Shown here: positions 13,621-57,483 of the stretch, one piece after another | How the letters are laid out: every line of letters begins with the position of its first letter | Numbering within the stretch: position 1 is the stretch's first letter | Assembly: GCF_006345805.1 (NCBI RefSeq) | Contig: NC_043026.1 | Location: 5,146,001 to 5,210,000, forward strand | Direction of reading: 5' to 3' | Length of the DNA stretch: 64,000 nt | Origin: Octopus sinensis | Lineage: Eukaryota | Notes under the pieces: model-generated | The model's database searches: none | Told to the model about the DNA's origin: nothing | What the model saw: only the letters and a program-made list of their open reading frames with translations | Translations under genes and position numbers: made by a program

Positions 13621-15474
13621 CTTGTCTTGAACTCTGACCATTCTTGCCACAGGACAATTTCTGGTCAAATACAAAGACAGAAAAGTAAACAAAGAGAGAG
13701 AGAGGGGGGATTGAAAGGTGTCAATTCTTTGACAATTTGGCCCTTTGGCTCTGGTCACACCATCATCATCATCATCATCATCATCATTAAAGCGTGAAAG
13801 TGGACAAAACACCAACGCTTATAAATGAAATGGTGTCTCAATTATGTTTTGTGGGACAAACAGACAGAATCTATCTTTTATATATTAAGATATATATCAA
13901 TCTATCTAACAATGTTCTTCCTGTCAGAGGACAGAGAGAGAAAGAGGTGCTCTGCGATCATGCTAGAAATAGAGACCAAGCACTTCCATGGAGGGATGAA
14001 TGGCAGGCTGGCTGCATGGATGGATGGATGGTTGGCTGGCTGGCTGGATGTATACATACATAAACGCCTGCTGTATGTATATATTGTATACAGTTGTTAT
14101 TTCGTTCGTCTCTCCATCATTTCTTCTCCAATCCATTTTCCGTTTCGAAAATCTTAGCATTTTTCGCTTCCAGGTAAGATTACAATCAAAGGGAGAGAAT
14201 TCTCCAAATGTAACAGTTTACATTAAGAGTGATTTCCCTTGACACTAAAAACTCTTCGCGTTTACAAAATTTTCTTTTCTCTTTCGGAGCAAAATTTCGT
14301 TCCATCTTTCTGTCCGTGTGTCGTTCTTTCTGCGTCTATTTATCTGTATCCCTGATTGTGTGTATTTATATCTCTGTGTCTGTGCATGCATGCATGCCTG
14401 TTTGTATGTCTGTATTTATGTATGTATACATGTATGTGTGTACGTATGTATGTATGCGTATGTGTTTGTGTGTGTATGTACATGCATACAAATACTCTTT
14501 GGGTCAAAGTGAGAAAGTGGCGATGATGGTGGGGTTTGGACCGCAGCTGCTGCTGCAACTACTAATACTACTCCAACTACTAATACTGCTACTGCTTGTA
14601 GTAGTAGTAGTAGTAGCAGCAGCAGCACTATACATGGAGGATATAAACTTGTTTTTCCCCTGATATCGATGTTATACATTCATGTGTGTGTGTGTGTGTG
14701 TTTTATTGCGCATTACTCAAATGAAAAGCTGAGGACCGCATCTATTTCATGCCAGTGGATGCGACCCTAGTCTGCCTCTTTCAGTTCAAACCAAGAGGGA
14801 CCGACTGCTTCCACCTTCATCCTTCACGCACTCTTTTCACATCTTCTTTGCTGTTTCCATGAGAATTTGGTTTTCTGATTGAGGTTGTTAGCTGCAAGTC
14901 AGCCTCTTTAGTCTCGATGACAGGTGGATTACCATCGGTCATTCTGGTACGGGTAACCCTGCCAAGAGCTTAAACTCTCACTAACATTTCCTTTTGGGTT
15001 ATAGACTCATCCCAGCCCTCCTCTGTTGCGACAAGGTAGCGATCGTTCTGTGGAGCTGTGTCTATGGTAGTAAAAGATAGTGTTATTACAAGAGGTTCTT
15101 TTTTTCTTTTAATGAAGAGAATCTATGGAAGAAAGAGGTTTTACTACCTGTAGATCCAGAGATCAGACACTCTAATTAGAAAGAGTATGGCAGAAGAACC
15201 TATTAATGACCTGCAAGATAATTAGAAGCGGATATAACATTCTTCAAATTTATGACTAAACAAGGCATTGTTGTTAACAATCGTTGTTGTGACACGTCAT
15301 TTTGCAACAGTGATGCTGAATAATTAAATTCACTTTTCCACAAACTGATCATCTCAATCAATTCTGTGCAACAATCGATAAAATGAATTTATAGATTCAT
15401 TTACAAATGGAATGTGTCAAACCATCTTAAAAATTCGTGTATTGCGTTCTTTTACACAGATTAGGAAAAACAAA

Positions 15475-16076
15475 AGAATATTTTTAAATAAAAGAATTTA
15501 TAAAGATGAAGTAGATTTCTTCAGTATTGACTGTGAAGGACCAAGGTTTGTTGGAAGCCCCAGGAGGGGAAGATGGAATGAATTGTATGTTGAAGGGTTG
15601 TTTATGGTGAATCGAGACAGCTTCCCGGTTGCTCGTTTACAAACAGACGAATGTCCTGTTCAAGTAAAAGATTTTGATGTCTCTGAGGAAGGAAAGACAG
15701 TTGTGTGTGAAAAAGCCAATAATGGAAATGTTAAAATATTCGATGAAGACGGCCAGTTGCTACGTCACAGAAATGTTGCAAGTTTAGTTGGTGGTGTGTG
15801 TTTTACACAAGAATCACACATAAAGGCCACGGTTCCTAAAAGGAAAGAAATATTTCAACTGAATGGAGAAGATTTGCAGACATCTCAAGTTTGGTCGAGT
15901 CTCATCCCTTATGGTGTAATATGGAGAAAAGTGGCGGGTATTTACTGGTGTGTACATAATGAATTGATTGAATGTCATTGCATAAAGATTGATGGGGACC
16001 AAGTGAACATTCTGGAATCTGTGTCGTTATTAAATCTTGATTCTGGTCTTCGTTTCCCTTCCATTACATCTGAAAC
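15475..16076 (+). pseudogene. Inverted partial duplicate (end of repeat 4 and most of repeat 5) of the propeller gene
   Basis: Aligns by eye to 41650-42241 reverse-complemented and is open for ~200 codons (ORF 15412..16083). It is truncated at the 3' end by a reversed SINE head. A possible phase-0 acceptor (gttcttttacacag) is at 15446-15459. Confidence 0.85.
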
Positions 16077-16126
16077 CACATAATGTGGTTGGGAAGCAAA
16101 CTTCTTAAAACACAGCCACTTCTGCG

Positions 16127-34009: not shown

Positions 34010-35370
34010 TTTCTTTTTGTAGTTTCAGCTCATGGTTGTGACCATGCTGGAGCACTGCCATTTGCTACTCTGTTTTTACTGAGAGTCTCCTCTAATATGT
34101 GGCCCATGGTGAAGAATGGAGTTTGATGTTGCTTATCCTCATTTGCACCTCTTGCCGTGAGGTAGGTTCATCTGGGACTCTTGACAGGAAGAGGTCCAGC
34201 TTTGATTTTAAAACCCCTACATCCACTTTGTGCAGGTTCCTCAGGCTCTTTGGGAGAATATTAAAAAGCTGTGGGTCCCTGAAGCCCAGGCTATTGCAGT
34301 AACAGGTCCTGAAGCGCGATGGCATTGCTGGGATCTTTGGCACTATGTAGTATTGGCCCCTTCTGGCATGGTGTAGCTTACAATGCCAAATTTTGGCACA
34401 ATTCCTTCCAGGATCTTCCAGACATATATTACTGCATACCTCTCCCGTCTTCTCTCCAGGGAGTAGAGTCTTTGCTGTGCCAACCTTTCCCAGTAGCTGA
34501 GCTGTTGCAAAGAGATGATCTTCTTTGTGAATCTTCTCTGGATTGCTTCAAGGTCCGCTGTTAATTTTACTCTGGTGGGTGACCATAGCTGTGAGCAGTA
34601 ATCCAGGCGGCTGAGGACGAATGTCGCCAGAGAACCATCATGATTTCCTTATCTCTGGTTCTGAATGTTCTTAGGATCCATCCAGCCAGTCATCTGCACT
34701 TATCGCCATCCTGGTAATGTGCACTTGGAAAGAGGTATCCTCACTCATGTCGATACCCAGGTCCCTCACAGACTTAGGCTCTGGAATTGAAATTCTCTGT
34801 GGACCGGTGTATCCTGTAAGTTTAATATTCAGTTTTGGATGCTGGTAGCACAGGGCCTGGAATTTTTCAGCATTAAACTGCATATTATTATTCTCAGCCC
34901 ATCTGTAGATTGAGTCCAACTCCTGCTGCAGGTGTGCAACATCGCTGGGGTTCTGTATATTCTGCGAGACTTTCGTATCGTCTGCATAGCTTGCCAGTGT
35001 GGCTATCCGGGCATTTGAGGGCATATCTGAGAGGGCTACTATAAAAAGCAGTTGTCCCAAGACAGTGCCCTGTGGAACATCGCTCACTATTTGTGTGTTC
35101 ATAGAGGTGGCTCCATTAACCACTACTGCCTGACTCCTATCTTTCAGGAAGTCATGTAACCACACTCCAAGTTTTCCAGCTATGCTGAGGTCACGCAGTT
35201 TGTGGCATATCATACCATGATCCACCTTGTCAAAAGCTTTTGCAAAATCAAGGTAGATTACGTCCACATTTGATTTGTTGAGTAACTGCCTCAACACCCA
35301 GTCATAATATTGTAAGAGCTGGGTCAGGCAGCTCTTACCTTGTCAAAAACCATGCTGGGTATCACTCAGC
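34010..35370 (-). mobile_element. 5'-truncated CR1-group LINE (RT and 3' tail)
   Basis: QHGFRQGKSC, YLDFAKAFDKVDH, VPQGTVLGQLLF, YADDTKV. The 3' tail is ggcagtgctccagcatgg...ctgaaac. Confidence 0.85.
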
Positions 35371-37926: not shown

Positions 37927-38677
37927 AAAACAGACAGACATACACATAGTCTGAGAGATAGATACACCAGTCTCTCTACTTTATATTTCTCTCTCTATAT
38001 ATGTATATAGATATTCATACACATCCACATATACATACATACATACATATATATATAGATAGATTCCGTGTATGTATCTCTCTATGTGTATATATATATA
38101 TTCATACTCATCCGATTATACATACACATACACACACACGCACACACACATATATACATATATATACATCTATACATACATTTTCCCGCCTTTTTCTCCA
38201 CGTTTTTTGTCATTCAAATTAGTGTTGCTAAGCTAGAAACAATTGAACGGGAAGCGGCAGAAGTTATAGAGAGACTCCAGACTGGGCAGTTTGTATGATA
38301 CCAGACCCGAAATATCACCAGATACCCTTAAGCATGGGTTGTCACAGATGGATTTACCCGTCGTCTTTTCTACGTGTGTGCAAGAAGTCTACGTATAATA
38401 ATGTATAATTATATGTATATATATTTGAGTTTATATATGAATATGTATGTACGTATAATATTCTGCTTTCCTGTGGGTATAGTAATGATGTATATTTATA
38501 TTCCTATATAAATGTATCGGCAATCCTATACAATAGAGTCGGAAATTATCCAATACCTCAAATATTCCAACATCTTTTGATATTTCTTTTTTAAACTTGT
38601 ACATATACATGAATAAATGTATACACAAACACACATACATATAATATATATATATACACACACCTACATTTCTACAG

Positions 38678-38732
<55 letters not shown>

Positions 38733-39566
38733 CTGTGGCATAACTACAGATGAACACCCCATCGACTTTGTTTCCTCATAACTTCCAGGAAAATGGATAT
38801 TTTTAATGGAACTTCCACTTTCATTTCCTAACAGAAAAGGATGCTCTCAAAAGAAATCCTCTTTTACAAAGCTCTTATTTAAATCCCTGTGGATAAATCC
38901 CAGCAAGAATCTTCTCAGGCTCTCCAATATTTTACAATTATATAAAGAGAAAGAATCGGGGGCCAGGAAGTGGGGCTAAAAATAATCAGAGATTTTTTAA
39001 ATATTCTTTTTATTTTTTTATAACATAAATGTGTTTCTGAGGGAAAAAATGATAAAAAAAAGAAGACAAGGAGGGTGGTGTGCTAGAAACAACAGCCAAA
39101 TCTCCCTTAAATCACACATTTTTTCCCTCGAACCCTTACAAAACATTTTGCCAACAAATTTCTTTGTAATCGTAATCTGCATCGTTTGAAAGTTATTTCT
39201 ACCAAATTTCATTCAAAAATACCCTTTTTTATGCAAAAATACCTTTATACACATGTATATACCTACATATACACACAGGTCTTTGCTATGTTTTTTAAAC
39301 ACATAAAACTCATAGATGCATACTTTTATAATATTTTACACTTAAACCGCCGCAGGACAATATTTTTAGAGTTGCTTCTTAAAGTGTCCTTCACTTTTTT
39401 TATGAACCCACAACAGCAACAACAACAACAACAACAACCCTACGAGGACGAAAGGCAATGTTTGTGCGTGTGTGCAGTTGGAATGTCACTGCAACAACAA
39501 CAACAATCTATTCTTTTTAAACGGTAAAAACTGTCAGATGCAGACTGCACACACGCACACACGACA

Positions 39567-40045
39567 CTGATGACGACGACGATGATGATGACGACGATGA
39601 TGATGATGATGGTGATGATGACGACGATGATGATGATGACGACGATATGATGATGATGACGACGACGATGCTGATGATGATGATGATGACGATGATGACG
39701 ATGATGATGACGACGATGATGATGATGACGATGATGGTGATGATGATGACGACGACGACGATGATGACGATGATGATAATGATGACGACGATGATGATGA
39801 TGACGATGATGGTGATGATGATGATGATGACGACGATGATGACGACGATGATGACGACGACGACCACGACGGCGGAGACGACGACGACGGCGGAGACGAC
39901 GACGACGGCGGAGGCGGCGGATACGACGACGACGACCACGACGGCGACGACGACCACGACGGCGACGACGGCCACGACGACGACGACGACTGCGGCGGAG
40001 ACGACGACCACCACCACGACGACGACGGCGGAGACGGCGGCGGTG
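39567..40045. repeat. Compound triplet repeat (GAT/GAC grading into GAC/GGC/CAC)
   Basis: Read directly; source of the poly-M/T, poly-S and poly-I/V pseudo-ORFs. Confidence 0.95.
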
Positions 40046-40432
40046 GTCGTCTGCCTTTTAATGGAGAATCAATGATTATGAAAGTCTCTGCTTTCGGACC
40101 AGACATTCCTATACATACATGCATGCGTATATATATATATATATACATATATATACATGCGTATATACACACACACACAAACATACATATTTATAGCCTT
40201 ATTTCTATACATACATTCCTAAATATGTGTATATATATATACTGTATATAAATACATGTACATATACTGTATATAAATATACACACACACACAAAGAGAG
40301 AGTGTTGAGGAATGTTACAACAATAAGTGTGTAGAATGCGATGTATGCGATGCAGGTTCGATTCCCGGGCGAAGCCATTTACAACAACAATAATAATAAT
40401 AAGAAGATTGAAGTTTAATATTTCTGGAAATA

Positions 40433-40438
40433 TTTATT
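40433..40438 (-). promoter_or_regulatory. Candidate AATAAA poly(A) signal overlapping the stop codon of the propeller gene
   Basis: Minus strand reads GAC AAA TAA ATA, so AATAAA contains the TAA stop. A T/GT-rich tract (ttattattattattgttgttgt) follows ~40 nt downstream. Confidence 0.35.
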
Positions 40439-43400
40439 TGTCAAAATAAAAGAAAGCAAAAGATTGACTTCCAGGAATAATTCCAAAAACCATCAAAGAA
40501 TTGTCTGAAACATCCAAACCAAGAACTTTAAAGACTTCATTATCATACCCTCTGAGGAGTAAATATTTTCGATTATCTTTAAATCCCAGGATTTCATCAT
40601 CTTCAGATGTTTCCTCTTCAATATGTCGAGGTATTTCGTAAATATTGTTTCTGAAATCTGTTATATAAACACATTCACCAATTATGGTCAGACGAGGTCT
40701 TGGAATATAATATTCCCGACCAATAAATATTCTTTCTCCTATTCTTATCCTCCTCACCAAAGACTTTTCCCTGAACCATTCCACAAAACACAAAACTTTC
40801 AATATTCCAGACCCCTTCTTCTTCATCTCCCACCTCACAACAACAACATCACCAAAAGATGTGACTCCCACACCATCCACCACCCCTTCGTCTCCCTCAA
40901 ACCTTCCCAATCTCCTCATCTCCCCACGACACACTTCATCTTTACATTTCCCATCTTTGAAATCAACCACATCCACATAATAAGGGTCAAAGATGTAGGG
41001 GTCTTTGTAAAAATAGTAATACTTGTTGTTTCTCCATTTTCTTTTGTATTTCATGTGTCTCTCTTTTTGAGTTATGTCTCTAATATAATGACCACCACAC
41101 ACGAGTTGATTGTCGTTGTATTTATAAATCCTGTTGTAGTATTTCTCAGTTCTGATGGTTTTTAAACGACGGAGATCCCTATCGAAGACCCTCATTTCTC
41201 TCCCAAAGGCGACAATGAAACATTCCTCTGTCCACCGACATATGTCCAGTGGTGTTCGTTGTTGTTGTTCATGTTGAAGTATGTCCACTGTTGTTGTTGT
41301 TGTTCTGATTAATGTGACACTTTCTCGAAACATCAACACACTCACATTCTCATCTAACTTAATTAGTTTACTGTTCCGGTCCCTAATGTCCCACAAATCA
41401 TAATCAACAGGTTCCTCGAATGCAGGAATGGAAAAAGGGACCATTGCTGTCCTATATGGAAATCTCCTCACTGATATTTCATCAATTCCTGAATTATTAA
41501 TCTCCGCTATGTAATTACCACATCTCACCTTTAATCTACCTTTACCAATTATTTCACCTGATTTACCTCTTCTTCTTCCTCCTCCATCTCCATCTCCTCC
41601 TCTGTATTCCAATTTATTAATTAATTCCTTACTGAATATTTCCTTGTTCGTTTCAGATGTAATGGAAGGGAAACGAAGACCAGAATCAAGATTTAATGAC
41701 GACACAGATTCCAGAATGTTCACTTGGTCCCCATCAATCTTTATGCAATGACATTCAATCAATTCATTATGTACACACCAGTAAATACCCGCCACTTTTC
41801 TCCATATTACACCATAAGGGATGAGACTCGACCAAACTTGAGATGTCTGCAAATCTTCTCCATTCAGTTGAAATATTTCTTTCCTTTTAGGAACCGTGGC
41901 CATTATGTGTGATTCTTGTGTAAAAACACACCACCAACTAAACTTGCAACATTTCTGTGACATAGCAACTGGCCGTCTTCATCGAATATTTTAACATTTC
42001 CATTATTGGCTTTTTCACACACAACTGTCTTTCCTTCCTCAGAGACATCAAAATCTTTTACTTGAACAGGACATTCGTCTGTTTGTAAACGAGCAACCGG
42101 GAAGCTGTCTCGATTCACCATAAACAACCCTTCAACATAAAATTCCTTCCTCCTGAGGCTTCCAACAAACCTTGGTCCTTTACAGTCTATACTGGAGAAA
42201 AGTACTCTATGTTTATAAATTCTTTCATTTAAAAATATTCTCTGGTATTCCCCATTCTGGGTCAAACACAAAATGTTTTCATATCTAGATGAACCTGAAC
42301 ATTTCTCCCACTCACCATAAATGTACAAAAAACTGTCATCAATTGTCATCCTGTCATCATCACTATAATAATCCTCCATGTAGTGTCTGACTGAATGTAA
42401 ATATTGACCACCACTGTTGAAGAAAATGATGAATCTTTCGTTAAAGACGATGATGACATCTTCATCAGTAACTTTAATATCCAGGATATCATCAGAACAA
42501 TTTCCATCTTCGTCTCTCAATATTAATGGTTCAGGTATGTCTATTTTTTTTATTTCCTTCACACTCGAATGTATTTCATCAATATCAACAAAATGCAAAT
42601 GTCTTCTATCTCCCGATTCACTCAAAACCAGTTGATTGTTTGATAAAGAAGCCACACAATAATATTTATTTCTCGTTTGGTAAATTACCAACGACAATGG
42701 AAATTCCACTTTTAATGTCAACAGTTGGTGTTTATTATTCGTAATGACCAGTGTGTTTGAATGCCATCGACACATTTTAATATAATAATAAACATTCACT
42801 TTGATTGAATCCAAAAGGTGACCATCCAATGTGAATATCTTAATGTTTCCATTCTTCCTGTCACATCCTGCAATCAGATTATTTTCAGTAAGAACCAAAC
42901 GATGAATCTCCACTGGTTCTTTGTCTCCCAAATGTTTAGGGAGAGGAATATGTCTGGCTTTATCAGAAACTGTCAGGTCCTGAAGATATAAAGTGGAAGA
43001 CAACATTTCACTGAGAGAAATGTTTCTGGAAAATACATCCACCAGGTCGATATAATAATTAAGTTGATTATTAGTAACGAGATCATTAACCAACAAATTC
43101 TGATCGTTTATGGCAAACATACGGCTTCTGTCTATCAGATAAACAGACGTTTGGTCAATAGATCCACCTTGGAGACTGAGGGGACGTTTCACTTGGGACA
43201 TTAAAACACTGGGGACCATCTGACGATCGCCATGACCACCACCACCTATTCTAGTGTTGTACTGAAAAGCTTTTCTCCTAGTAACAATTAATAGCTTTTC
43301 TGTTTTCTTGTCTATTGATAATGATTTCACAAACACAGGGATATTAATTGTCTTAATTACTTCAACTTGATTATAATAATTGATGGCTAAAATGTCTAAA

Positions 43401-45712
43401 TGTGATGGTTTATCACAATAACAAACAATTTCACATTCACCCATCTTACACACCCGTACATAAGGCTGCCTTAATGATACACTTCTCACTCTCTTTGATA
43501 GGTTTCCGATGACCCTTAATTGTTTCTGTAGGGGTAATGTGACCCCTATATGATTAGAATCCCATCGACATATATCTGTGGCTGTAGACGGCAGAGATAA
43601 TCTGGACACAATGTCTCCTTCCTCAGAAATGTACATCAAGCAATCATGCTTGATGTCAGACACCACCAACTGTCCATTGGACAGATTACATATTTCACCA
43701 ATGACAAGTTTTTGGTCATTCTCCTTTTCTTTGAGTCGTAGATTTAGATTTCTGATATAAGGATTTTTAATGGGTAAAAGGCAGGCAGACGACCGGTCTT
43801 GATACTTGTATAGAAGAACCCTGTTGAGTTGAGTGTCCGGGACATAAAGAGTTCCTTGGAAAACAGCAATGTGAGGGTGAACAGGGAAAGGCAGTTCCCA
43901 CTGCCATTTCATTTCTCCATATAGATCGTAACATCTGAGAATAGAGTGTCTCCTGAAGAGGACATAGAAATAAACATTATCAGAGTAGATGTGATGAGGG
44001 TAGCCATAGAATGGAAGGTATTTTTGAAAAAGTTCTTCACCACATGTGGAATAAAATACCATTTTATTTTCGTTTCCATCTACGACTACAAAATTAATTG
44101 GAGTTGCAGCAATGCTGACATTATGATGTCCCAGAGAAATTCTTTCTGCAATGTCAACTTTATCTTCGTTGATCAAGAGGATATGGACCTCGCTTTTGTT
44201 TTCAGTGGTGGTCACAGCCAGACACTTATTTGATACAATATGACATATTTTCATGTAACCAGTTTGCACCTTTATTAAAGGGCCTTTTCTTAGTTCAGGA
44301 CAGGTGATATACTGAAATCCTTTCATTTCAGGATAAAATACCAGGAATCTGTTTGCGTTTATTCTACAACAGAAAGAAGGAAGCTCAAGGAAAACTGAAT
44401 TATTTTGGTTAATTATTTCCCCGTTATCAGTGAATAATTTAGCTTTCTTGTTTTTGTAAATTATTAATATAGAAGATGTAGACATAGGTAGAATATCTGT
44501 AATGTTGTAGCAATCCTCAATATCAATATAGTCTTTTAAACTGGGGGTATGTAGCTGGTGGTTGTATGACAGTTTGGGCCAAAAGTCTTTATTCATTTGA
44601 ATACCATGTGGTTTGCCGCAATAATCTGTTACCAAAATGGTATCTTTACCAACAGAAATAGAGCGGCATTTCCTGCCAATGTCCCTCCTTGTTACACCAC
44701 CTTTAGCTGAAATCCTATAAATTATTTGTCCCTGGAGGACATAGAAATAATTTTGGTACAGAGAGATTTTACTTGGGAGGTGCAGAGAATGGGTCTCTAC
44801 CTCCCATAACTGTTGGCCATCCAGTTTGTAACAGATTACTCTGTTGATGCTGGCGAATGTAATTGCAAGTATATTCTGGACCCCTACAGCAATATCTGTA
44901 GGGGTTTCTTTGGTAATAAATTGATAGTTAATGGTGTTATCCTCCCAATCAAATTGGTAAACTGTCTTACCAAACATTTCTACACCTATAAGTGTAGAAT
45001 CTTCCAAGTAACTCACCATATATAACCCCAACTTTATCCTTTTGATCTTGAAGGTTTTGGGGCTGATAATAAGAATCATTTCTTGGAATGGGAGGGTTGC
45101 CAGAACCATGTCTTCACTGATTCTTGTGAAACTGGTCACAGAAGATGGACAATGGACATCAATTCTGTCACTGTCTCTTGTTACTAAACTTATTATCTTG
45201 CAATGGTGGGAATATGTCATAACTCCCTCCTCTATAATGACAATATTGGATATTATTGGGATTTCTTCAAATTCTTCTCCAGATTCCTTGATATTTGCTA
45301 CCCTGGTCACAACTAGCTGAAGAGGCCGAAATTTTGTTACTTTTGCTGGTTCTATGGTCTTGTGGTTGTATGGATTGCTGGTGACATAAATGTCAAAGAG
45401 TCTTTGTTGAAACCATTCAAGGTCCTGCACAATAGAAATATTCTGTTCTTTAGTATTTTTCAGCAAAATTCCAAGTCTCTCTTTGACCTTTTCTAAAATA
45501 GAATTGGCACTTAATCCCAGACTTTCATAATGTTTGCTCTCCTTAACTATATGCTCCATAAACATCATGCAGCGATCATATTGAAGAATCCTCTGTATTT
45601 TAGCAACTATTTGTTTTTCAGTTTCTTTTGTGCTTTCTTTGTCTCCAGACATGGCCTTCACTGCTGATTCTCTCTCTGAACTAACCCTAGTATTTTCAGT
45701 CTGGTCTTCCAT
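40434..45712 (-). CDS. ~1759-aa protein with six tandem NHL/six-bladed beta-propeller-like domains (TRIM-NHL C-terminal-like), single coding exon; appears as two ORFs (1269 aa and 509 aa) because of a 1-nt frameshift at ~41915
   Basis: The two overlapping long stop-free ORFs have normal globular composition. A motif recurs about every 800 nt: SFTRISEDMVLATLP, FCCRINANRFLVFYP, TDICRWDSNHIGVTLP, KMCRWHSNTLVIT, GGVCFTQESHIMATVP, LDICRWTEECFIVAF. NHL-like D...GNIKIFTLDG / NGNVKIFDEDG motifs are present. The copy at 15.8 kb reads through the junction in frame. Span is 5279 nt, plus 1 nt = 1760 codons including the stop. Domain identity is from motif recognition, not an HMM run. Confidence 0.8.
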
Positions 45713-45719
45713 AGTGAAT

Positions 45720-45756
45720 CTGTAAAGAAATATAAGGAAAACATTTAGCTTTGTGA
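45720..45756 (-). promoter_or_regulatory. Splice acceptor (branch-like CTAAA, polypyrimidine tract, CAG) immediately upstream of the large coding exon
   Basis: Minus strand reads gctaaatgttttccttatatttctttacAG|ATTCACT-ATG-G. AG is at 45721-45720, the ATG at 45712 has A at -3 and G at +4. Confidence 0.7.
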
Positions 45757-47796
45757 AAATATTAAAGTTTCAGGGAGATGATGTTTGCTTCATCATTTGA
45801 AAAACACAAACAAAACATTTATGTATTTTTGTCAGGGAATTAATCTTGTCTAATTAATATCTAAACAACTTATTACAATCTATTATAAGATGTATTAATA
45901 AGTGTCATTAATTACATGGAGTCTAAATATTAGAAATAATTATTTTCACTGGAAATGATATTTGCTCTCAACATCACAAAGAAATAGTCATGTGTGGCTT
46001 AGATTTATTTAACGATAATTAGTCAAAGAGATTCCCCTGCTCCAAAAGCACTCAATAACGAGACACTAAGCTGTAGAGATAATTAACTTTAATTGGTGTA
46101 CATGCTATATTATGTCCCAACACACAGCAATCATGTTCAAACTTCGTTAACATGGAACAATTAGCAAAACATAGACTTTATTATGTTTCATAGACATTTG
46201 TCAGATACAAGTATTACTAATGATGGGACAGTCATGGTTGGCTTGGTTTCCATCATATTTACTTGGATTAACAGATATGAATAAAGCTGGAGATGAAACT
46301 GTTCTTAACCTGACAAATGCTGTAAATCTCTCGACATTTCAATATAATCCACACAATTATCATACACAACATTGATTAACTCGGAAAGCTTATCCGAAGA
46401 TGGGCTTTCATATAATCACACTGATAGACAGCATGTTGAGAGGATCGTTATTATTTGTTGCTGATTGAGATAATAAAGATTGGTTAATGAATAAGCCCAA
46501 TTAATGAAAGTTAGGTTCATCTTAATTATCTTTAATATAAGGGACAATGTTTGGGTAGCAATGAGAAAGATGTGTTTGTATGAAAAAGGGGTTTGGCAGG
46601 TGAAGTGTGTTTTGTTTTGTGTCAGGTGAGGAGTTATAACTTGGTGTAGTTTATTATGAAGTATTGGGTGTTTAATGAGGTGGATTAGGAAATATTGGTG
46701 GGGGTGTTTAATGACATTGTGGTGACCCATCATCATCAGAATGATCCTCCACCCCTCCTTGGTCTATGAAATAATAACTGTTACTCTATTGACCCCAGGA
46801 GGAATGAAAAATAAAAGAGACCTTCTTCAGGATGTCAGCTCTTTGAATAAACATGGACTAAACAACAACATATTTTGGAGAAAAGCTGGATAAGGCTATG
46901 TTGTTGTTATTGCTGTTGATGTTGACAACAAAGTTTATAAAGAGAAAAGCAGATAATTGCAAATATTTCAATTGTAAAATTAAATTGGAATGAATGTTTA
47001 TGTTTCATTTGTGCCATTATTTGGTTATTTTGGGGAAGAAAAACCTACAAAACCCCTCATAATAATTAGACTTTAATCTAATTGTAGATGTATTTATTAC
47101 ACATGCATACATATATATGAATGAATGTGTATAATATATACACAAGGATGCAACATATGTATATTTATACATCCATACGTCTATGTATGTATGATGATCA
47201 TCATTTTACCTCCACTTCCAATGCTGGAATGGGTTGGATGGTTCAGAGAATATCTTGCCTGAAGTTCCAGTTTTTCTGGTTTCTTTCTGCAGCTGGATGC
47301 TCTCCTGACACCAACCACTGCACAATGTGCACTAGGTGCATCTTATGGCACCATCGCTAGAGGCGATGCCGTCCTTGACAAAACTAAATGTCCCCTCAAT
47401 CTCTGGGTTCACATACACCTTGTGGATGTGTGAGAGATCTAGGGTAAAAATATATGAAAAGGAGTGGTTTGGGTGTTGGGGAGAGACCCAGGTGGTCCAG
47501 TAATATCCTAGTTTCATTGAAGAATGGTGAAGGAAGAGATTTACTGCCATCTTTGTCACAGCAGTAAGATAGTAGAGTAAAAAGAAGAAGAGAGAGTGAT
47601 TGAGAGATGAAAGACAGAGGTAGGGGTGATTGGGACGTGACAGTAGGGACTCAAGGTCTGAGAGTTGACACTCATCAAACTGGTTTTTGGAGGTCTGGGA
47701 ATATACCTCCAAAGAACCAGTTTGATAAATGCTAATAAACGAAACTTTCGGATCTTGGGTCACTTTGTTACTTCTGCTAAATATTAATATATATAT

Positions 47797-47827
<31 letters not shown>

Positions 47828-47828
<1 letters not shown>

Positions 47829-49317
47829 TATCAAAGGGCCTTAGAGTCAACCTAGCTAAAACCAAAGTCCTAATAAGTAGGAAGGCAGGCAAACCACAAA
47901 CCCCTTCAGGTAGATGGCCCTGCACAATCTGTAGTAGAGGTGTAGGTAGAAACTCTAAGATGTACCCAGTGTAAGCTATGGACACATAAGAGGTGCAGCA
48001 ACGTCAAGGGAAGGCTAACTAGGAAAATAGTTTTTGTATATGGCAGATGCTTGGGAGCTATAAATACTGAAAATGTGCAGAGATCAACTTCCGCCACATT
48101 CCAGGAAGAAAAACTAGAAGTAGTTGATAGCTTCCGTGGACTAGGTGACAAAGTCAGTAGCAGGGGAGGGTGCACTGAAAGTGTGGCTGCTAGAATAAGA
48201 ATAGCTTGGGCAAATTTCAGAGAGCTCTTACCTCTGCTGGTGACAAAGGGCCTCTCACTCAGAGTAAAAGGTAGACAGTATGTCACATGTGTACGAACAG
48301 CCATGCTACATGGCAGTGAAACATGGGCTGTGACTGCTGAGAACATATGTAAGCTCACAAGGAATGAAGCCAGTATGCTCTGATGGATGTGTAATGTCAG
48401 TGTGCATACTCGAGAGAGTGTAAGTACCTTCAGAGAAAAGTTGGACCTAAGAAGCATCAGATGTGGTGTGCAAGAGAGACAACTGTGCTGGTATGGTCAT
48501 GTGGCAAGAATGGATGAGGATAGCTGTGTGAGAAAGTGCCACACCATAGCGGTTGAGGGAACCTGTGGAAGAGGTAGACCCAGGAAGATCTGAGATGAAG
48601 AGGTGAAGCACGACCTTCGAACTTTAGGCCTCACCAAGGAAATGACTAGTGACCGCGACTTTTGGAAATATGCCGTGTGTGAGAAGACCCAGCAAACCAA
48701 ATGAGACCATAACCTCGTGGCCTATGCCAGGGGCATAACCAGCCCACTTATGCATACCTTTTCCTTCTTTGGACGACTTAAACTCTGCTTGCGAAGACCT
48801 GTTGATCAAGTGAAATCAAAATCAAATTCGATGACTAGCGTCCGTAGCGGCTAACTGGCTTCTGTGCCAGTGGCCCTTAAAAGGCACCCTTCGATTGTGA
48901 TCGTTACAAGCGTCACCTTACTGGCACTCGAGCCCCGTGCTTGTAGGGTATTAAGAGCACCATCCGAGCGTGATCGTTGCCAGAGCGGCTAACTAGCCTC
49001 CATGCCGTTGGCACATAAAAGTCACCATTCGAGTGTGATAGTTACCAGCATCGCCTTACTGGCACCTGTGCCGGTGGCATGTGTAAAAGATTTGAGCAAG
49101 GTCATTACCAGTATCGCGTGACTGGCCCCGTGCCAGTGACACGTAAAAGCACCCACTACACTCTCGGAGTGGTTGGCGTTAAGAAGGGCATCCAGCTGTA
49201 GAAACTCTGCCAGATCAACATTGGAGCCTGGTGCAGCCATCTGGTTCACCAGACCTCAGTCAAATTGTCCAACCCATGCTAGCTTGGAAAGTGGACGTTA
49301 AACGATGATGATGATGA
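47828..49317 (+). mobile_element. 5'-truncated RTE LINE with tandem-repeat 3' UTR and (GAT)n tail
   Basis: KGLRVNLAKTK, LEVVDSF, LRVKGR, WYGHV, GRGRPRK motifs; tail aagggcatccagctgtagaaac...gttaaacgatgatgatgatgat. Confidence 0.85.
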
Positions 49318-50574
49318 TATATACATACATACAGATATACATAAATGGACATATGTAAATATATGAATATACCTTCACATACCCGTGTATAAATGTTTGT
49401 GTCTATGTATGTTTATAGATATGAATCAATGAATGACAAAAGAACAAGAGTTACATAGACACCTTCATTAGCTTCCAGCTGTTTCTGCTACAGGAAGCGG
49501 TGAACTCGAGCTGAGTGTGTGTGCGCATAGGTGTCTGTGCATTTGTTTATGTTTGCAATCTCTTTTAAGTTGCTCCAGGCAGAAACATCTGTCAACCAAT
49601 CACCCCCACCTTGGAAGACATGGGAAATATGAACTTTTGTTCTTGCAAAATGGTTTTGGGTGAGCAATAAGAAGGCTGTCTGTCTGTAAAACAAGGCTAC
49701 AATAATATATTCACCTAACCCATGCTAGCATACAAAATCAGATGTGCAATCAAACATAAGTAAACCCATGTTTATGCATTCATATACTCTTATGCATGCA
49801 TAAACACACACACACACGTGTATGTGTGCATCTGGTGTTAAGAAGATCATCCAGCTGTAGAAATCTTGCCAAATCTTTCATTGGAGCTCAGCAATGTCCT
49901 CTGGTTCACTGCTTCCTCGTCAACTGTCCTACCCATGCCAGTTAGGGAAAATGGATGTCAAAACCTTTATAATACATCAGGTGGTGTATTTTCTTTTCTG
50001 TATTTTCCTTCTAATAATTTTGTTTTGTTTCTTGCCAGGTTCTTGTGAGTCCCACTCAGTCAAGTCTATGACTACACTCGATGAGGCTTACCAATCCTCA
50101 CCTGGTTTCAAGCAAGAGAATATTTCCCCAAGTTCTTCCAACATGAACAGCACAATGGTTGGATATGTTTTCTGGTGGAACACTGCAAACAAACGACTCT
50201 GTTTGTTGACGTGACATTTGTTTATAATTCGCAGTAGATGTCAAGACAAGGAGACATGAGCAGACATTTGCACACACACACACACACACACACATACATG
50301 CATACACATACAAGTACAAATGTAGATATGCATACATGAATATACACCCACATGTATATACCATAGGATTTATCAGTTCCATGTACGAAACCCATTCACA
50401 AGGCTTGAATCAACCTGGAACATTAGAAGAAGTTAATTCTTTAAGGTGCTGCAAAGTGGGACTGAACCTGAGACCACAAGGTTCTGAAGTGAATTTCTTA
50501 ACCATACAGCTATGCCCCCAAATTTTTTTGGTAATATTTTAAAGATAATAATAATCCTTTCTACTATAGGCATA

Positions 50575-50766
50575 AGGCCTGAAATTTTGGGTGTGGGGGG
50601 TTAATTGATTATGTCACCCCCCAGCACCTAACTGGTTCTTATTTTATCAATCCCAAAAGGACGAGGGGCAAAATCACCCTTGGTGGAATTTGAACTCAAA
50701 ATGTAAACTTGGAAGAAATGATGCAAAGTATTTTGTCTGGCATTTTGTAACAATTCTGCTTGTTCA

Positions 50767-50814
<48 letters not shown>

Positions 50815-51226
50815 GGAGAAGAATATCAATAACTATAACAATAACAACATCAATAATAATAATAATAATAATAATAATAATTATAACAATAATAATAATA
50901 ATAATAAAAATAATAATAATAACAATAACAATAATAATAATTGATAATAATAATAATAACAACAACAACAGCAATGATTAAAAAAAATTCTTTTTTAAAT
51001 GATTTCCAGTTTTGGCGCAAGGCCAGCAAGTTTAAGGAAGGGTCCAGTCTATTACACTGACCCCAGTACTCAACTTGTACTTAATTTATCGATCCAAAGA
51101 GGATGAGAGGCTAAGTCAACCTTGGTGGAATTTGAACTCAGAATGTAAAGATGGACAAAATGCCGCTCAACATTTTGCTTTGCTTCCTCACAATTCTGCC
51201 AGGACGTCACAGTAATTATAATGATA

Positions 51227-51272
<46 letters not shown>

Positions 51273-51636
51273 TAATAATAATGATAATAATATAATATAA
51301 TAATATGATATAATAATAATAAATAATAATATAAATAATGATAATAATAATAATAATAATATAATAGAATAATAATGATAATATAATAGAATAATAATAA
51401 AATAATAATAATAATAAAATAAAATAATAATAATAATAATAATGAATAATAATAAAAAAAATAAAAATAATAATAATAATATTATAACAATAAAATAATA
51501 ATATAATATAATAATAATAATAAAATAATAATTATAACAAAATAATAATACATAATAATGATAATAATAATAATAATAATATAATAATAAAAAAAAAAAA
51601 TAATAAAATAATAATAATAATAATAATAATTATAAC

Positions 51637-51675
<39 letters not shown>

Positions 51676-52021
51676 TATAACAATAATAATATAATAATAA
51701 AAATAATAATAATAACAATAACAATAATAATAATTGATAATAATAAAATAACAACAACAACACAATGATTAAAAAAATTCTTTTTTAAATGATTTCCAGT
51801 TTTGGCGCAAGGCCAGCAGTTAAGGAAGGGTCCAGTCTATTACACTGACCCCAGTACTCAACTAGTATTAATTATCGATCCAAGAGGATGAGAGGCTAAG
51901 TCAACCTTGGTGGAATTTGAACTCAGAATGTAAAGATGGACAAAATGCCGCTCAACATTTTTGCTTTGCTTCCTCACAATTCTGCCAGCACGTCACAGTA
52001 ATTATAATGATAATGATAATA

Positions 52022-52054
<33 letters not shown>

Positions 52055-52500
52055 TAATAATAATAATAATATTAATAATAATATAATAATAATAATAAGA
52101 AGAAGAAGAATGCTTTCTTACAATAGGCACAAGGCCTGAAATTTGGGGTGAGGGGACTAGTAAATTACATCGCCTCCAGTGCATAGCTGGAACTTATTGA
52201 ATCGACGCCAAAAGGATGAAAGGCAAAGTTGACCTTGGTGGAATTTGAACTCAGAATGTAGTGGCAGATGAGTCGTAATAATAATAATAATAATGGCTTT
52301 AAATTTTAACAGAAGCCCAGAAAGTTCTGGAGAGCAGGTAAATTGATTACATCGACCCCAGAACTCAAAAGGTACTTATTTTATTGACCCCGAAAGGATG
52401 AAGGTTGATGTCTGCAAAATTTGCACGGAGAACGTAAAGGCAAACAAATAGCTGCCTAGCATTTTTCCCAGCATGCTAACGATTCTGCCAGCTCACCACC
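50575..52500 (-). mobile_element. Five same-orientation family-B SINE copies separated by (AAT)n tracts
   Basis: Reversed family B landmarks (ggtggaatttgaactcagaat, attctgcc) near 50680, 51125, 51910, 52240 and 52420. Confidence 0.75.
50775..52100. repeat. Extended, partly degraded (AAT)n tracts with a ~790-bp tandem duplication
   Basis: 50940-51240 is repeated at 51730-52030. Confidence 0.9.
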
Positions 52501-53237
52501 CAAATAATAGTAATAGTAATTAATAATAATAATAGTAATTAATAATAATGATAACAACCCTTCCTTTCCTATTTTATATCCTTCATATGTCCTTCTCTTC
52601 TTTTACTTTCTTCTCTCTCTCTTTCTCTCATTCCCTCTCTCCTTTTCAATATCAACTTCAACATTTTATTTCCCTTTTACATAAACATGTATATATTATG
52701 TGTGTGTATTTATATAGTGTACGTGTATATATGTATATATATTCTTTTATTCTTGCACTTGTTTCTGTCATTTCACTGTGGCCATACTGGAGCACTGCCT
52801 TTAGTCAAACAAATTGACCCCATGACCTATTCTTTGTAAGCCTAGTACTTATTCTATTGGTGTCTTTTGCTGAACTTTTAAGTTACAGGGATGTAAACAC
52901 ACCAAGCAATGTTAGTGGGACAAAAATAAAGACACAATTACGTACCTATTTGATTTCTTAGCTTATATTTCTGTAAAATTGATTTAGAAATTTTGAATTT
53001 TCCATGCAAACTAAAATCTAAACTTTTTGTCATTAAATATAATTTACATTTTCTTTCTTTAGAATTCATCAAATATTTTTTGAAATTGTTCAAAAAATAT
53101 AAACTTTCTCTTCTTGTAAAAGTATTGAAATCCTGGACACATTTTTATAGTTTATAAAATGGTTGGAGGAAATTAGCACAAACGTGAAGAGTGTGTGTAT
53201 ATATGTATGTATACAAGTGTGTATCTCTCTCTCTCTC

Positions 53238-53274
<37 letters not shown>

Positions 53275-53758
53275 TTTCCATGATTTAATCATTAGTACTT
53301 ACTGTTTAATTAAAATATCAACTTCATTTCCTAATTTAGCTGATCCACAAATAGATTCGGTTAAAATATTTACCGGACTTAAAAAGAAATGTTGGTGCTA
53401 ATACAATCAGCTAAATACATAAAGGCAATGCTCCAGCATGGCCCTGGTTCAATAACTAAAGGAGTAAAACACATCAGCCACACATTACATACATAACTTG
53501 AAATCTCTACTTCACCACGACCACCACCATTTAGTCTGTTAACCTATCTCTATAAATGACACACCCTCTCTTCAATTATTATTCATGTCTTTCTCATTCA
53601 CAAATCTACACTTTAAAAAAAAACATCACTATTCTATTTCTCAACCAAGCTGATAATTCCACAGAAATCTCCAAGAATATTTCTAAATTTACCAAATTAT
53701 AACATAGATTATTCCTTCAAATACAATATTTAAATGTAATTTATAAAAATATATCAAA

Positions 53759-54031
53759 ACTGCCTGAAAATAAAACAAATTCCAATATAAAAGTTTATGC
53801 TTCAAATAGTTCTAATGAAGCTTTAACGAAGTGTATTGGTAAATTGCGTATTAAATAAAATAATTACCTGGATTACTTGTGTTGAGGTGTTTATTCTAGC
53901 CTGAAGACTTTGTCTCTCTCAGAAATATTGTGCAAGAGTGGCAATGGTTTGGCTAGTGTGCTGCACTTAAAGCTATATTTATAATCTACCAGGAAGAAGT
54001 TTCTAGATACCTGGTGGGTGTTACCTTGTCA
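53759..54031 (-). repeat. Direct duplication copy 1 containing a candidate 104-nt GT-AG intron (53764-53867) and a non-coding exon
   Basis: ~98% identical to 55618-55888. Minus strand has donor CCAG|gtaatt and acceptor ttgttttattttcag|GCAGT. Confidence 0.65.
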
Positions 54032-54179
54032 AACCATGTCGAAGCTGATCATCTAGAGCACCTGACAGTTTACGAGTACCACTACCACCAGAAAATATTT
54101 CATCTGAAGAGTCAACAAGTAGCAGAAGCCAAGAAATGGTGGAAGCTTTCGTACCATGAACGACTTCAGAGCCTCACCT

Positions 54180-54760
54180 TCCAAATCAGAGTGAGCTAGA
54201 TGATTTAATCAGGGATCTGGGTCTTACTAAGTCAGGAGTTGAACTTGTTTCATCAAGGTTGAAGGAATGGAATCTACTGGGGGAAGACTGCAAGACATCT
54301 GTGAACTGGAAATGCCATGAAGTGGGGATCATGGTGAGAGATTTCATCAGGACGTTGCAACTATGGAAAGAAGATACCAAGGATGATGGGATACTTCTAT
54401 GATGGGAGATTATATATGGTCTCTAGTCAGAAGAGATGAAGGTATACACTCTAGAAAATCTCGATCGTCAAAGCACTTCTCATCTTAAGAAAAGAGTTAT
54501 CAAGGCATTTACAGTGCAGAGTTTTATTGTTTCTTTTTGTTGTAACTAATATTATACTTCCTAAATACTTTTCAATAAATGAAAAATTACTGAATGTTGT
54601 GTAATTATCCTTACAATACTAGAATAGATTGAACCAACAAAGTGCTGTAGAGAAAAGTTACAAATATAACGAGCAAATATGAAATTAGGAATAAATAAAT
54701 AACTATCAATGTTAGGTAAAAATGAATGTGATTTTTGAATTTAGTGGCAAAAAATGCTTA
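54180..54760 (+). mobile_element. Chapaev-like DNA transposon remnant, internally deleted
   Basis: QSELDDLIRDLGLTKSGVELVSSRLKEWNLL joined to HGERFHQDVATMERRYQG; I recognise both as Chapaev-type transposase motifs. Confidence 0.55.
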
Positions 54761-55617
54761 TATGAACATTAAAAAGTACAAATAAACAAAACATGTGTTA
54801 CATTGTGTTAGTAGAGTCGTTAGAACGTTGGACTTAGACACAAACTTAATCAGGCTATAAATTTGTTTTTTACTTATTTTGCTTTCTTTCTTTTTGTGGA
54901 AAAATCCGATCCTCAATATTGAAATTTGTATACATATATAGCTACACACACACACTAACTTGTGGTATTTATACAAACTCTTTGTCTACTGAGTTCAAAT
55001 CCTGCCGAGATTAATTTTGATTTTTTATTATGCAGGGGTCGATAATTAAAATGCCAGTCTGAGGTGGTGGTCTGATGGATTTATATATTTGACAAGATGC
55101 CTTGTAGTATTTAATGTGGTTCTTTGTGATCTGAGTTCAAATCCTTTTGTTGCCTCCCTGGGTTGCAGACTTAATCTATCACCTTTTTCAACACCATCAC
55201 CTGGCCCTTGAGATGCTTTTTAGGAGAGGATTTCTCTGTTGTATGCATTCATGTTAGGTCTCTTGTTTTGAGAATGTCTATCTTCCATTCACCACTTTTG
55301 AAGACCCTGGAAATATAAAGGACCATCGGCAGGGCCCTTCTCCCTTGCTAAGCTTTTAAAAAATTAAGTTTACAAAAAGCTAATAATTTAACAGCCATAA
55401 AATTTACAAATTTTATATTTCACTTGAGAATTAGAAATCCACTGTAAACTACCTAAAATTGTGTATCCTTAGATGAACATATCCATTCCTCTAATTTCCA
55501 TTAAATAGTTTTGACATAGTCATAACCAAACTATACTTTATTTTATATTCTGGAAATGAAAATGTTTATTTGTAATGTAACAGTGTAAAGTCTTTGAAAA
55601 GTTTCTTGTCTAAAAAT

Positions 55618-55888
55618 ACTGCCTGAAAATAAAACAAATTCCAATATAAAAGTTTATGCTTCAAATAGTTCTAATGAAGCTTTAACGAAGTGTATTGGTA
55701 AATTGCGTATTAAATAAAATAATTACCTGGATTACTTGTGTTGAGGTGTTTATTCTAGCCTGAAGACTGTCTCTCTCAGAAATATCATGCAAGAGTGGCA
55801 ATGGTTTGGCTAGTATACTGCACTTAAAGCTATATTTATAATCTACCAGGAAGAAGTTTCTAGATACCTGGTGGGTGTTACCTTGTCA
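55618..55888 (-). repeat. Direct duplication copy 2 (candidate intron 55623-55726)
   Basis: Differs from copy 1 by one 2-nt indel and four substitutions by eye; splice motifs are conserved. Confidence 0.65.
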
Positions 55889-56394
55889 TGGGTATGTATC
55901 TTGGTTTAAAAGTATGTGTCTGTTGTAGTGTATAGGTATGTGTGTGTATATGTTGGTGTGTTGTAGTATATGTTAGCCAGATTACATCGACACGCCTATC
56001 TCAGATTAACACAGACTGTATGAATGACACCCTCTCCCCACCTCCCATCCAATTCTATATTCTTTCTTTCTCTCTTTACATCCTCTCCAACATGGCCACC
56101 ACCACCACCTCTCCATGCATTTCCATTCAAGTGTTTCATGTTTCTGAACCAATCATATTCACTTATTTTGCCTTCTTTCTTTATATGGAAAAATCCCATC
56201 CTCAACATTTAAATTTGTATACATACATATATAGCTACACACACACACATGTACATATATATACATATAAACATGTACCTACAAACACACCCATATACAT
56301 ACACACATACAGGCATACCTTTTCCAATGAGTTGTAGTGACCCTAACATCGTATACAATAAGCCCATTATAGTTATTATTATTATTATAATTAA

Positions 56395-56600
56395 TAAGAA
56401 TCGTTAGCATACAGGGCAAAATGCTTAGTGGTATTTCACTTGTCACTACGTTCCAAGTTCAAATTCCACCGAGGCCGACTTTGGTTTCATCTTCCCAGGG
56501 TCAATAAAACAAGTATCATTTGAGTACTGAGGCCGATGTAGTCGACCGTCCGCTTCCCTACGAAATGTCAGGCCTTGTGCCTTTAGAAGAAAGGACTGTT
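56395..56600 (+). mobile_element. SINE family B copy
   Basis: aatcgttagc...aaaatgcttagtggtatttc...gttcaaattccaccgagg. Confidence 0.7.

Positions 56601-57435: not shown

Positions 57436-57483
<48 letters not shown>

Follow-up and report, generated by a model that had tools for sequence, protein, structure and literature searches.

An octopod family of tandem NHL-type propeller proteins with two diversifying propellers

What kind of protein is encoded by a 5.3-kb region of the Octopus sinensis genome that looks like one very large exon, and what might such a protein do? The question arose from a preliminary description, made from the letters alone, of a 64,000-nucleotide stretch of this genome (NCBI RefSeq assembly GCF_006345805.1, contig NC_043026.1, positions 5,146,001 to 5,210,000; hereafter the window, whose own numbering is used throughout). 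It proposed, at 40434-45712, an intronless protein of about 1760 amino acids (aa) built from six tandem NHL-like beta-propellers. We find that the region belongs to a family of octopod paralogs with an N-terminal module followed by six propeller units, and we hold this architecture and its homology to NHL domains with high confidence. Propellers 4 and 6 are under strong diversifying selection, whereas propellers 2, 3 and 5 are under purifying selection. The best explanation overall, to which we give slightly better than even credence, would be an octopod multi-propeller scaffold with two variable recognition propellers.

The coding region and its six repeat units

On the minus strand, positions 45712-40434 form a coding region of about 1,760 codons with no intron within the coding sequence (CDS). 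It is read as two open reading frames (ORFs) in different frames, 45712-41903 (1269 aa) and 41963-40434 (509 aa), which overlap by 61 nucleotides (nt). A single G is absent between 41926 and 41925, both in a DNA alignment with a paralog fragment that lies in the same window and in comparison with the homologs fetched as sequence, all 21 of which keep ...SLVGGVCFTQESH... / ...NVASLVGGVCFTQESHIMATVP... in one frame. The main gene lacks one G in GGTGGTGTGT[G]TTTTACAC; the Cys codon of a V-C-F motif is thereby broken, and the shifted frame runs into a premature TAA at 41905-41903. Because the paralog fragment and the homologs read through the junction, the proposed "one 5.3-kb coding exon" is a gene of about 1,760 codons with a single 1-nt deletion: the region, its size and its intron-free CDS stand, but the frame is split in two. 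The 5.3 kb show no second lesion, and stretches of 1262 and 496 codons stay open in DNA that is rich in AT. The preliminary description speaks of a repaired 1759-aa sequence, which suggests that the break had been noticed there. The two pieces (A and B below) were searched separately without rejoining the frame, and codon alignments carried an NNN placeholder codon at the break.

The term intronless likewise applies to the CDS only. An AG at 45721-45720 (...tttctttacAG) is identical in the sister paralog (L009), and the O. vulgaris gene model P0001 joins an upstream exon exactly there. Situated 8 nt ahead of the ATG, this putative splice acceptor points to an additional, probably untranslated exon upstream at the 5' end of the transcript. 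The gene was also said to lie in a repeat desert, and inside it the only Tandem Repeats Finder match is indeed one weak repeat of 1.9 copies. The features of the locus are as follows (percentages are hhalign values; strand and blade counts are from AlphaFold2 models).

45720..45721, minus strand: probable 3' splice acceptor, polypyrimidine tract plus AG, in the sequence tttccttatatttctttacAG followed by attcactATG.
41927..45712, minus strand: CDS piece A, codons 1-1262 (Met to ...NVASLVGGV), from the ORF list; frame shared with all homologs, 91-92% aa identity to P0001.
41925..41926, minus strand: frameshift site, from the DNA alignment with the paralog fragment and from 21 homologs.
40434..41924, minus strand: CDS piece B, 496 codons (FTQESHIMATVP... 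to ...FAFFYFDK) with the stop at 40436-40434, from the ORF list; C-terminus the same in homologs.
45314..45712, minus strand: N-terminal module of about 133 aa, hydrophilic, helical by sequence pattern only, delimited by an alignment of N-termini.
44549..45313, minus strand: propeller unit 1, motif F-T-R-I near 45130; 23 short strands in about six four-stranded blades, predicted local distance difference test (pLDDT) about 80-88; 81% to the B-box protein P0090.
43751..44548, minus strand: propeller unit 2, motif C-C-R-I at 44368; 24 strands, six blades, pLDDT about 75-88; 37-44% in register with units 1 and 4.
42953..43750, minus strand: propeller unit 3, carrying the motif D-I-C-R-W at 43570 and a Gly-rich insert; three blades modelled; 96% to the B-box and NHL protein P0089.
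42107..42952, minus strand: propeller unit 4, carrying the motif M-C-R-W at 42772; recent paralogs are hypervariable here; six four-stranded blades; 95-96% to RING/B-box-NHL proteins over the whole propeller.
41418..42106, minus strand: propeller unit 5, motif V-C-F broken by the frameshift, the most conserved unit, with a Gly/Arg-rich disordered insert; about four blades in an intact paralog; 78% to P0087.
40437..41417, minus strand: propeller unit 6, carrying the motif D-I-C-R-W at 41240; hypervariable, its variable loops being long and K/R/E/Y-rich; all-beta but irregular; 66-70% to P0087 and P0089.

The preliminary description had counted a C-R-(W/I) motif six times. The expression C[RV][WIF] matches just five times across both ORFs (44368, 43570, 42772, 41930 and 41240), every match falling into a period of 266, 266, about 281 and 230 aa. 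At the sixth site, near 45130, the residues are T-R-I and not C-R-I, although they occupy the same column of the pooled unit alignment; the fifth motif (V-C-F in intact paralogs) coincides with the position of the frameshift. Self-BLAST of the pieces was barely significant (E 1e-4), and profile-profile comparison was needed to reveal the repeat. When a 19-member family alignment was cut into six units of about 250 aa, the best matches between unit profiles were all in register (3 with 6, 95%; 4 with 6, 91%; 4 with 5, 87%; 3 with 4, 75%; 2 with 4, 44%; 1 with 2, 37%). The profiles thus support six diverged, mutually homologous tandem units of about 230-330 aa each.

The N-terminal module has the conserved pattern GL(D/S)..FL...L.WF..L.DIY..NPY.HKTI and occurs in at least three sequence types among the paralogs; across the intact members of the family it measures about 100-130 aa. 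It gave no match in Pfam, and hhalign against the coiled coils of four molluscan proteins (P0087, P0089, P0090 and P0092) gave probabilities below 1%. Neither a signal peptide nor a transmembrane segment was found, the maximum KD19 value of the hydrophilic N-terminus being 1.4; this agrees with the earlier view of a hydrophilic N-terminal part of about 130 aa that lacks a signal peptide, and the protein is predicted to be soluble.

The inserts of unit 5 (about 41650-41580; Gly/Arg-rich, YRGGDGDGGGRRRGKSG) and unit 3 (about 43100-43060; Gly-rich, IGGGGHG) are predicted to be disordered (pLDDT <50) and differ in length between paralogs. A Walker-A-like GxxxxGKS in the unit 5 insert was dismissed, as it is not conserved in Argonauta or in P0049. 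The linker preceding the unit 6 motif is enlarged in Argonauta to a long Pro/Gln/Tyr-rich repeat.

Relationship to NHL propellers and predicted fold

A pooled profile of 36 unit sequences matched, among the structures of the PDB, the NHL domains of human TRIM2 (E 1.5e-6) and TRIM3 (3e-5), followed by Drosophila Thin (5e-3) and TRIM71 (1e-2). Among 1.84 billion representative proteins, the best matches outside the family were molluscan RING/B-box-NHL proteins, such as that of the cuttlefish Acanthosepion pharaonis (CAE1315789.1, P0087; E 5e-8), whose RING, B-box and NHL domains were confirmed by Pfam; further outside matches were B-box and/or NHL proteins, one of them from a freshwater mussel. 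Alignment of the pooled unit to P0087 with hhalign reached 98.2% (E 5.7e-14) over 200 columns that cover the whole propeller, and includes the motif GIC.W....vvTLPe.KQ, which is the motif of the preliminary description. Taken one by one, units 3 and 4 matched RING/B-box-NHL proteins at 95-96%, unit 1 at 81%, unit 5 at 78% and unit 6 at 66-70%; unit 2 alone, too diverged, gave no hhalign match to the molluscan RING/B-box-NHL proteins. The label NHL-like is thus borne out for the pooled profile and for five of the six units individually.

No RING or B-box was matched by Pfam in the two window ORFs and five homologs, none is listed in the precomputed Pfam annotation of any of the 68 family matches described below, and a tblastn search of the 64-kb window with the RING/B-box N-termini of four molluscan relatives gave no match (best E 0.25), in line with the lack of these domains noted before. 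The same Pfam search of both window ORFs and five homologs returned noise only (DUF4934, E 0.04-0.18), a phmmer search of piece A against PDB sequences found no match, and a precomputed PF23381 tag on P0023 was not reproduced by Pfam. By these sequence comparisons the protein is not a TRIM and has neither a catalytic nor a ligase domain, and its propellers are of NHL type, closest to the molluscan TRIM-NHL-like ones. Nearest outsiders of the RING/B-box-NHL kind fit the proposal of a lineage-specific derivative that lost its RBCC part (RING, B-box, coiled coil) and amplified the propeller sixfold. Of that proposal, the restriction to octopods and the six NHL units stand on the searches; the loss and the internal amplification we infer, as the simplest account of the origin.

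AlphaFold2 was run on residues 130-1269 of the window protein (22-row alignment) and on residues 951-1798 of the intact paralog P0005, which span the frameshift site. Both models are all-beta with strands of 5-8 residues (mean pLDDT 68.5 and 71.9, pTM 0.36 and 0.67). Units 1, 2 and 4 contain 23-24 short strands arranged as six four-stranded blades; unit 3 shows three blades and then falls below pLDDT 50 over residues 662-788 of the modelled segment, unit 5 shows about four blades and an unmodelled Gly/Arg-rich insert, and the fold of unit 6 is irregular. In the PDB, Foldseek matched only multi-propeller proteins (IFT-A, LRP2/LRP4/Sevenless, DDB1 and Utp21) with E values of 1e-13 to 1e-22. The models confirm the prediction of a tandem beta-propeller array, with six blades clear for units 1, 2 and 4, probably as closed rings. 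Since units 3, 5 and 6 are modelled in part, six closed six-bladed propellers are supported only in part.

The comparison with known proteins sets the family apart in several ways. The molluscan RING/B-box-NHL proteins (P0087 and the B-box proteins P0089, P0090 and P0092, the last being Potamilus streckersoni KAK3588083.1) have a propeller whose homology extends along its entire length of about 200-230 aa and which shares with the octopod family a motif after blade 1, ..G.ll....l...P.gIC.W....vvvTlPe.Kqi.; these relatives, however, combine RING and/or B-box with one propeller in 470-760 aa, whereas the octopod proteins have no RING/B-box, a different N-terminal module and six propellers in about 1,780 aa. 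TRIM2, TRIM3, TRIM71/LIN-41, Brat and Thin/TRIM32 have the NHL-type blade signature of the octopod units and a six-bladed, four-stranded propeller of the kind modelled for units 1, 2 and 4. They are single-propeller RBCC E3 ligases and conserved single-copy regulators that bind RNA or protein, in contrast to the octopod family with its six propellers, dozens of paralogs, two propellers with a nonsynonymous to synonymous rate ratio (omega) above 1, and no RBCC. LRP2, LRP4 and Sevenless, of the YWTD type of the LDLR family, carry several six-bladed propellers per chain and are among the top Foldseek matches, a generic likeness; YWTD arrays are extracellular, and their signal peptide, EGF spacers and YWTD motif all lack a counterpart in the octopod proteins by Pfam and N-terminal hydropathy. 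DDB1, IFT-A and Utp21 are cytosolic multi-propeller scaffolds that also rank at the top in Foldseek, but they are seven-bladed WD40 proteins, conserved and single-copy. A WD40 signature was not matched by Pfam in the seven members, and no sequence relation to a natural WD40 domain appeared; the sole WD40-type PDB matches were the repetitive 2ymu and its fragments or designs, most of which (2ymu and WRAP-T included) had no single passing stretch.

The octopod family and selection on its propellers

The search with piece A yielded 68 protein clusters (90% identity), a lower bound for the family, all of them belonging to Octopus vulgaris, O. sinensis, O. bimaculoides or Argonauta hians and all annotated as uncharacterized or hypothetical, with full-length members of 1,660-1,915 aa. 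O. bimaculoides XP_014783180.1 is one example of this six-unit family. In the profile search of the 1.84 billion proteins, strong matches occurred only in Octopus and Argonauta, although the library held proteins of cuttlefish and other molluscs; a single-copy ortholog with this architecture elsewhere among animals was not among them. The searches support a lineage-specific family found in octopods only, in which the window gene is no singular gene but one of dozens of paralogs already present in databases as uncharacterized proteins. The two window ORFs themselves are absent from the protein collection (no row is marked as window-encoded). Pfam has no model for the family, and the literature searched gave no description of it; one publication (PMC8382680) lists only a B-box orthogroup as expanded in bivalves.

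At nine fetched loci the whole family sequence lies within one uninterrupted ORF in every case, and eight of the nine gene models are single exons spanning exactly 3 x (aa+1) bases, the ninth (P0001) adding a small upstream exon. Most O. vulgaris members are on one 29-Mb chromosome (OX597841.1), the fetched ones at 9.57, 9.79, 10.30 and 22.66 Mb, and numerous family fragments lie on the same chromosome. The window copy has collinear full-length similarity with the octopod family, its aa identity to P0001 extending over 1261 columns. A maximum likelihood (ML) tree placed it as sister to P0001 and, with 100/100 support, in a clade of eight that is otherwise all O. vulgaris, with terminal branches of 0.054 for the window copy and 0.062 for its intact sister. 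Older subfamilies contain 1:1 orthologs between species, and P0071/P0100 form the deepest lineage, P0071 being XP_014788575.1. This tree, with 1:1 orthologs in old subfamilies and a recent burst, indicates birth-and-death evolution with recent species-specific bursts on one small chromosome.

Window positions 38182-58046 (38.2-58.0 kb) are collinear with the flanks of the P0005 gene (L001 18612-21) at 86-97.6% identity, over more than 12 kb upstream and about 2 kb downstream, and the duplicated segments are therefore at least 20 kb long, beyond the ORF alone. The non-coding part 54048-56813 is 97.6% identical to the P0005 flank, above the 90.8% of the coding region. Paralogs also combine in mosaics: the window copy and L009 share an N-terminus of type A, and L001, L007 and L008 one of type B, whereas one type of unit 1 occurs in the window copy, L007 and L009 and the other in L001 and L008 (window 45712-44549). 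These differing combinations point to recombination or gene conversion among paralogs.

Pairwise dN/dS across the family is 0.3-0.6, and the genes are therefore constrained. Selection on the single units was analysed in five close paralogs, the window copy and four intact O. vulgaris genes. Units 2, 3 and 5 have few changes, with pN/pS mostly 0.2-0.8. Units 4 and 6 differ by 46-73 nonsynonymous against 4-13 synonymous changes, and pN/pS exceeds 1 in ten of ten pairs (1.1-2.1 in unit 4, 1.3-4.0 in unit 6). Two phylogenetically independent pairs gave 232 nonsynonymous versus 34 synonymous differences in units 4 and 6 together (binomial p 0.0016), and units 4 and 6 differed from units 2, 3 and 5 with a Fisher p of 2e-5. 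Under an ML codon model (GY+F3X4 in IQ-TREE), the domain-wide, tree-based estimates of omega, which are neither site-model nor recombination-aware, were as follows (lnL, log-likelihood).

Single units: unit 2, omega 0.47; unit 3, 0.47; unit 4, 2.39; unit 5, 0.41; unit 6, 2.75.
Units 4 and 6 together: omega 2.51; lnL -4198.27 with omega free and -4214.37 with omega=1; twice the difference 32.2.
Units 2, 3 and 5 together: omega 0.48; lnL -3953.02 with omega free and -3961.88 with omega=1; twice the difference 17.7.

With omega=1 rejected for units 4 and 6 together, these propellers are under strong diversifying selection; propellers 2, 3 and 5, with which they are interleaved, are under purifying selection. 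The excess is not accounted for by conversion from divergent donors, since synonymous divergence is not raised in units 4 and 6. The variable sites cluster in short patches; in unit 4 they make up 40 of 83 sites in the BC and DA loops, 13 of 49 in the AB and CD loops and 26 of 135 in strands (p 0.017), so that on the predicted model the changes appear enriched in the loops of one propeller face. In deep comparisons, too, no other propellers have diverged as much as units 4 and 6.

The paralogous fragment that the preliminary description had noticed nearby was recovered, with an open frame:

15450..16077, plus strand: isolated paralog fragment of 627 base pairs (bp), end of unit 4 and start of unit 5, located by tblastn and translation; frame uninterrupted where the main gene has its break.

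It is 97.6% identical in nt sequence to the P0005 gene (L001 13558-14184), closer than to the window's own gene. The fragment ends in a microsatellite and lies about 2.5 kb from the endonuclease ORF of a long interspersed nuclear element (LINE). Two LINE remnants are present in the window, one at 18583-19890 (plus strand; 436-aa ORF, Exo_endo_phos (APE) domain, E 5.5e-15) and one at 34674-35297 (minus strand; 208-aa ORF, RVT_1, E 4e-17). An imperfect (GAC/GAT)n array of about 450 bp at 39568-40027, some 400 bp downstream of the gene's stop codon, yields spurious poly-V, poly-S and poly-T ORFs on both strands. Among other members of the family, P0007, on O. vulgaris chromosome OX597841.1, is followed 4 kb downstream by a C2H2 zinc-finger gene (L008 19390-22767), and P0001, likewise at 4 kb downstream, by an uninterrupted ORF of 946 codons (L009 31505-34342) that may be a transposable element. 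Two database models of family members are fused to zf-C2H2 or DUF4371, probably as annotation artefacts from neighbours.

Possible function, alternative explanations and meaning

In the explanation that we prefer, the N-terminal module together with propellers 1-3 and 5 would form a constant scaffold from which propellers 4 and 6 offer two variable faces for binding. Each paralog would recognise a different, fast-changing ligand in the cytoplasm, and the conserved propellers and the N-terminal module would couple this recognition to a common partner in trans. Domain-wide omega above 1 and gene bursts are typical of conflict genes. The ligand would most likely be RNA or protein from pathogens or mobile elements, a guess made because the top face of the NHL domain binds RNA in TRIM-NHL proteins (PMC4015489, PMC5908797, PMC9070667) and because omega exceeds 1 in a family with gene bursts. 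The values of omega in propellers 4 and 6 make the earlier idea of a sensor, immune or RNA-binding protein more plausible. That these are recognition proteins diversified among paralogs seems to us just on the probable side; a specifically immune or conflict-related role is more doubtful, and we put it forward as tentative.

There is an evolutionary analogy in vertebrates. The B30.2 domains of TRIM5alpha and of the fish finTRIM proteins combine multigene expansion with positive selection on surface loops of a C-terminal binding domain; they differ in having the B30.2/SPRY fold, and not NHL, and in retaining RBCC. Taken to its full extent, the preferred explanation would make the family a new class of intracellular, germline-diversified receptors of octopods, in which propellers 4 and 6 would bind pathogen or transposon RNA or protein and the rest would signal via a partner in trans, a counterpart in a different fold to TRIM5/finTRIM or NLR arrays. 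In this extended form we consider it rather unlikely.

Several points weigh against the preferred explanation. We infer the function from sequence, selection and models alone. The omega values come from five paralogs that recombine, N-terminus and unit 1 being mosaic, and recombination can distort tree-based tests; the assignment of variable sites to one loop face uses DSSP on a predicted model and reaches a p of just 0.017. The AlphaFold2 alignments are shallow (21-22 paralogs) and leave unit 3 half modelled, unit 6 modelled in part and the unit 5 insert without a model. The Foldseek matches are generic and do not single out NHL; their TM scores are low (0.1-0.27), as different domain arrangements would lead one to expect. 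The NHL model of Pfam (PF01436, gathering threshold 20 bits) has no match in seven members even at E<=1, although the profile-profile comparisons proposed as a check do match NHL propellers. Another proposed check, structure prediction, gave the repeated four-stranded blades described above. Finally, the window copy itself carries the frameshift.

This last point bears on the window copy and leaves the reading of the family unaffected. The copy may be a young pseudogene, its deletion real, its product cut after propeller 4 and the locus inert, which we regard as nearly an even call, leaning slightly to the doubtful side. The missing G relative to all compared homologs and the premature TAA speak for it, as do the absence of the window ORFs from the protein collection and the many fragments that the family leaves on the same chromosome, one of them in the window. 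Yet nothing else is damaged within 5.3 kb, no stop interrupts either piece in this AT-rich DNA, the terminal branch does not exceed the intact sister's in length, and the missing G turns GTGTGTGTTTT into GTGTGTTTTT, a low-complexity context prone to assembly errors. Selfish amplification of the ORF as cargo of a transposable element or endogenised virus would fit a large, intronless, multi-copy ORF in a window with LINE endonuclease and reverse transcriptase remnants and with an isolated gene fragment at 15.4 kb. We reject it: no transposase, reverse transcriptase, integrase or capsid domain was found by Pfam in any member, the duplicates include at least 12 kb of upstream and about 2 kb of downstream collinear flank and do not end at element termini, species share 1:1 orthologs in the old subfamilies, and cellular RING/B-box-NHL genes are the closest relatives.

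Two further explanations concern what the propellers bind. The proteins might be multivalent RNA-binding post-transcriptional regulators of development or the nervous system, like Brat, LIN-41 and Mei-P26, with no role in immunity or conflict. Homology of the units to TRIM-NHL propellers, whose top face binds RNA, and the Gly/Arg-rich inserts of units 3 and 5 are compatible with this, and neural gene-family expansions are known in Octopus genomes; but domain-wide omega of 2.4-2.7 in two propellers together with species-specific bursts would be unusual for developmental regulators, and propellers 4 and 6, with pI values of 7.8 and 5.3, show no marked basicity, so that we consider this putative role unlikely. 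A substrate receptor or adaptor scaffold working with a separate E3 ligase or other enzyme, comparable to the triple propeller of DDB1 and selecting substrates through its variable propellers, is in our view less probable still. It could draw on the presence of DDB1 and other multi-propeller scaffolds among the top Foldseek matches, on an ancestry in E3-ligase-linked NHL propellers and on the conservation of the N-terminal module and some propellers; the Foldseek similarity is generic, however (TM 0.15-0.2), the partner is hypothetical, and an adaptor would overlap with the scaffold of two recognition propellers instead of excluding it.

What is known here is the NHL building block and the presence of member proteins in public databases; new are the architecture, the taxonomic restriction and the pattern of selection. 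As far as our searches of the literature reach, six NHL-type propellers without RBCC are unreported for animal NHL proteins. Little is known of innate immunity in cephalopods, most of whose large lineage-specific gene families are unexplored, and this family comprises dozens of 5.3-kb genes restricted to octopods. The contrast between propellers under purifying selection and two with omega of about 2.5 provides a concrete hypothesis for the location of ligand sites. If the family is a recognition system, it would represent a new way to build diversified receptors and a new fate for the TRIM-NHL propeller; if it is not, it would still be a clean case of domain amplification and birth-and-death evolution.

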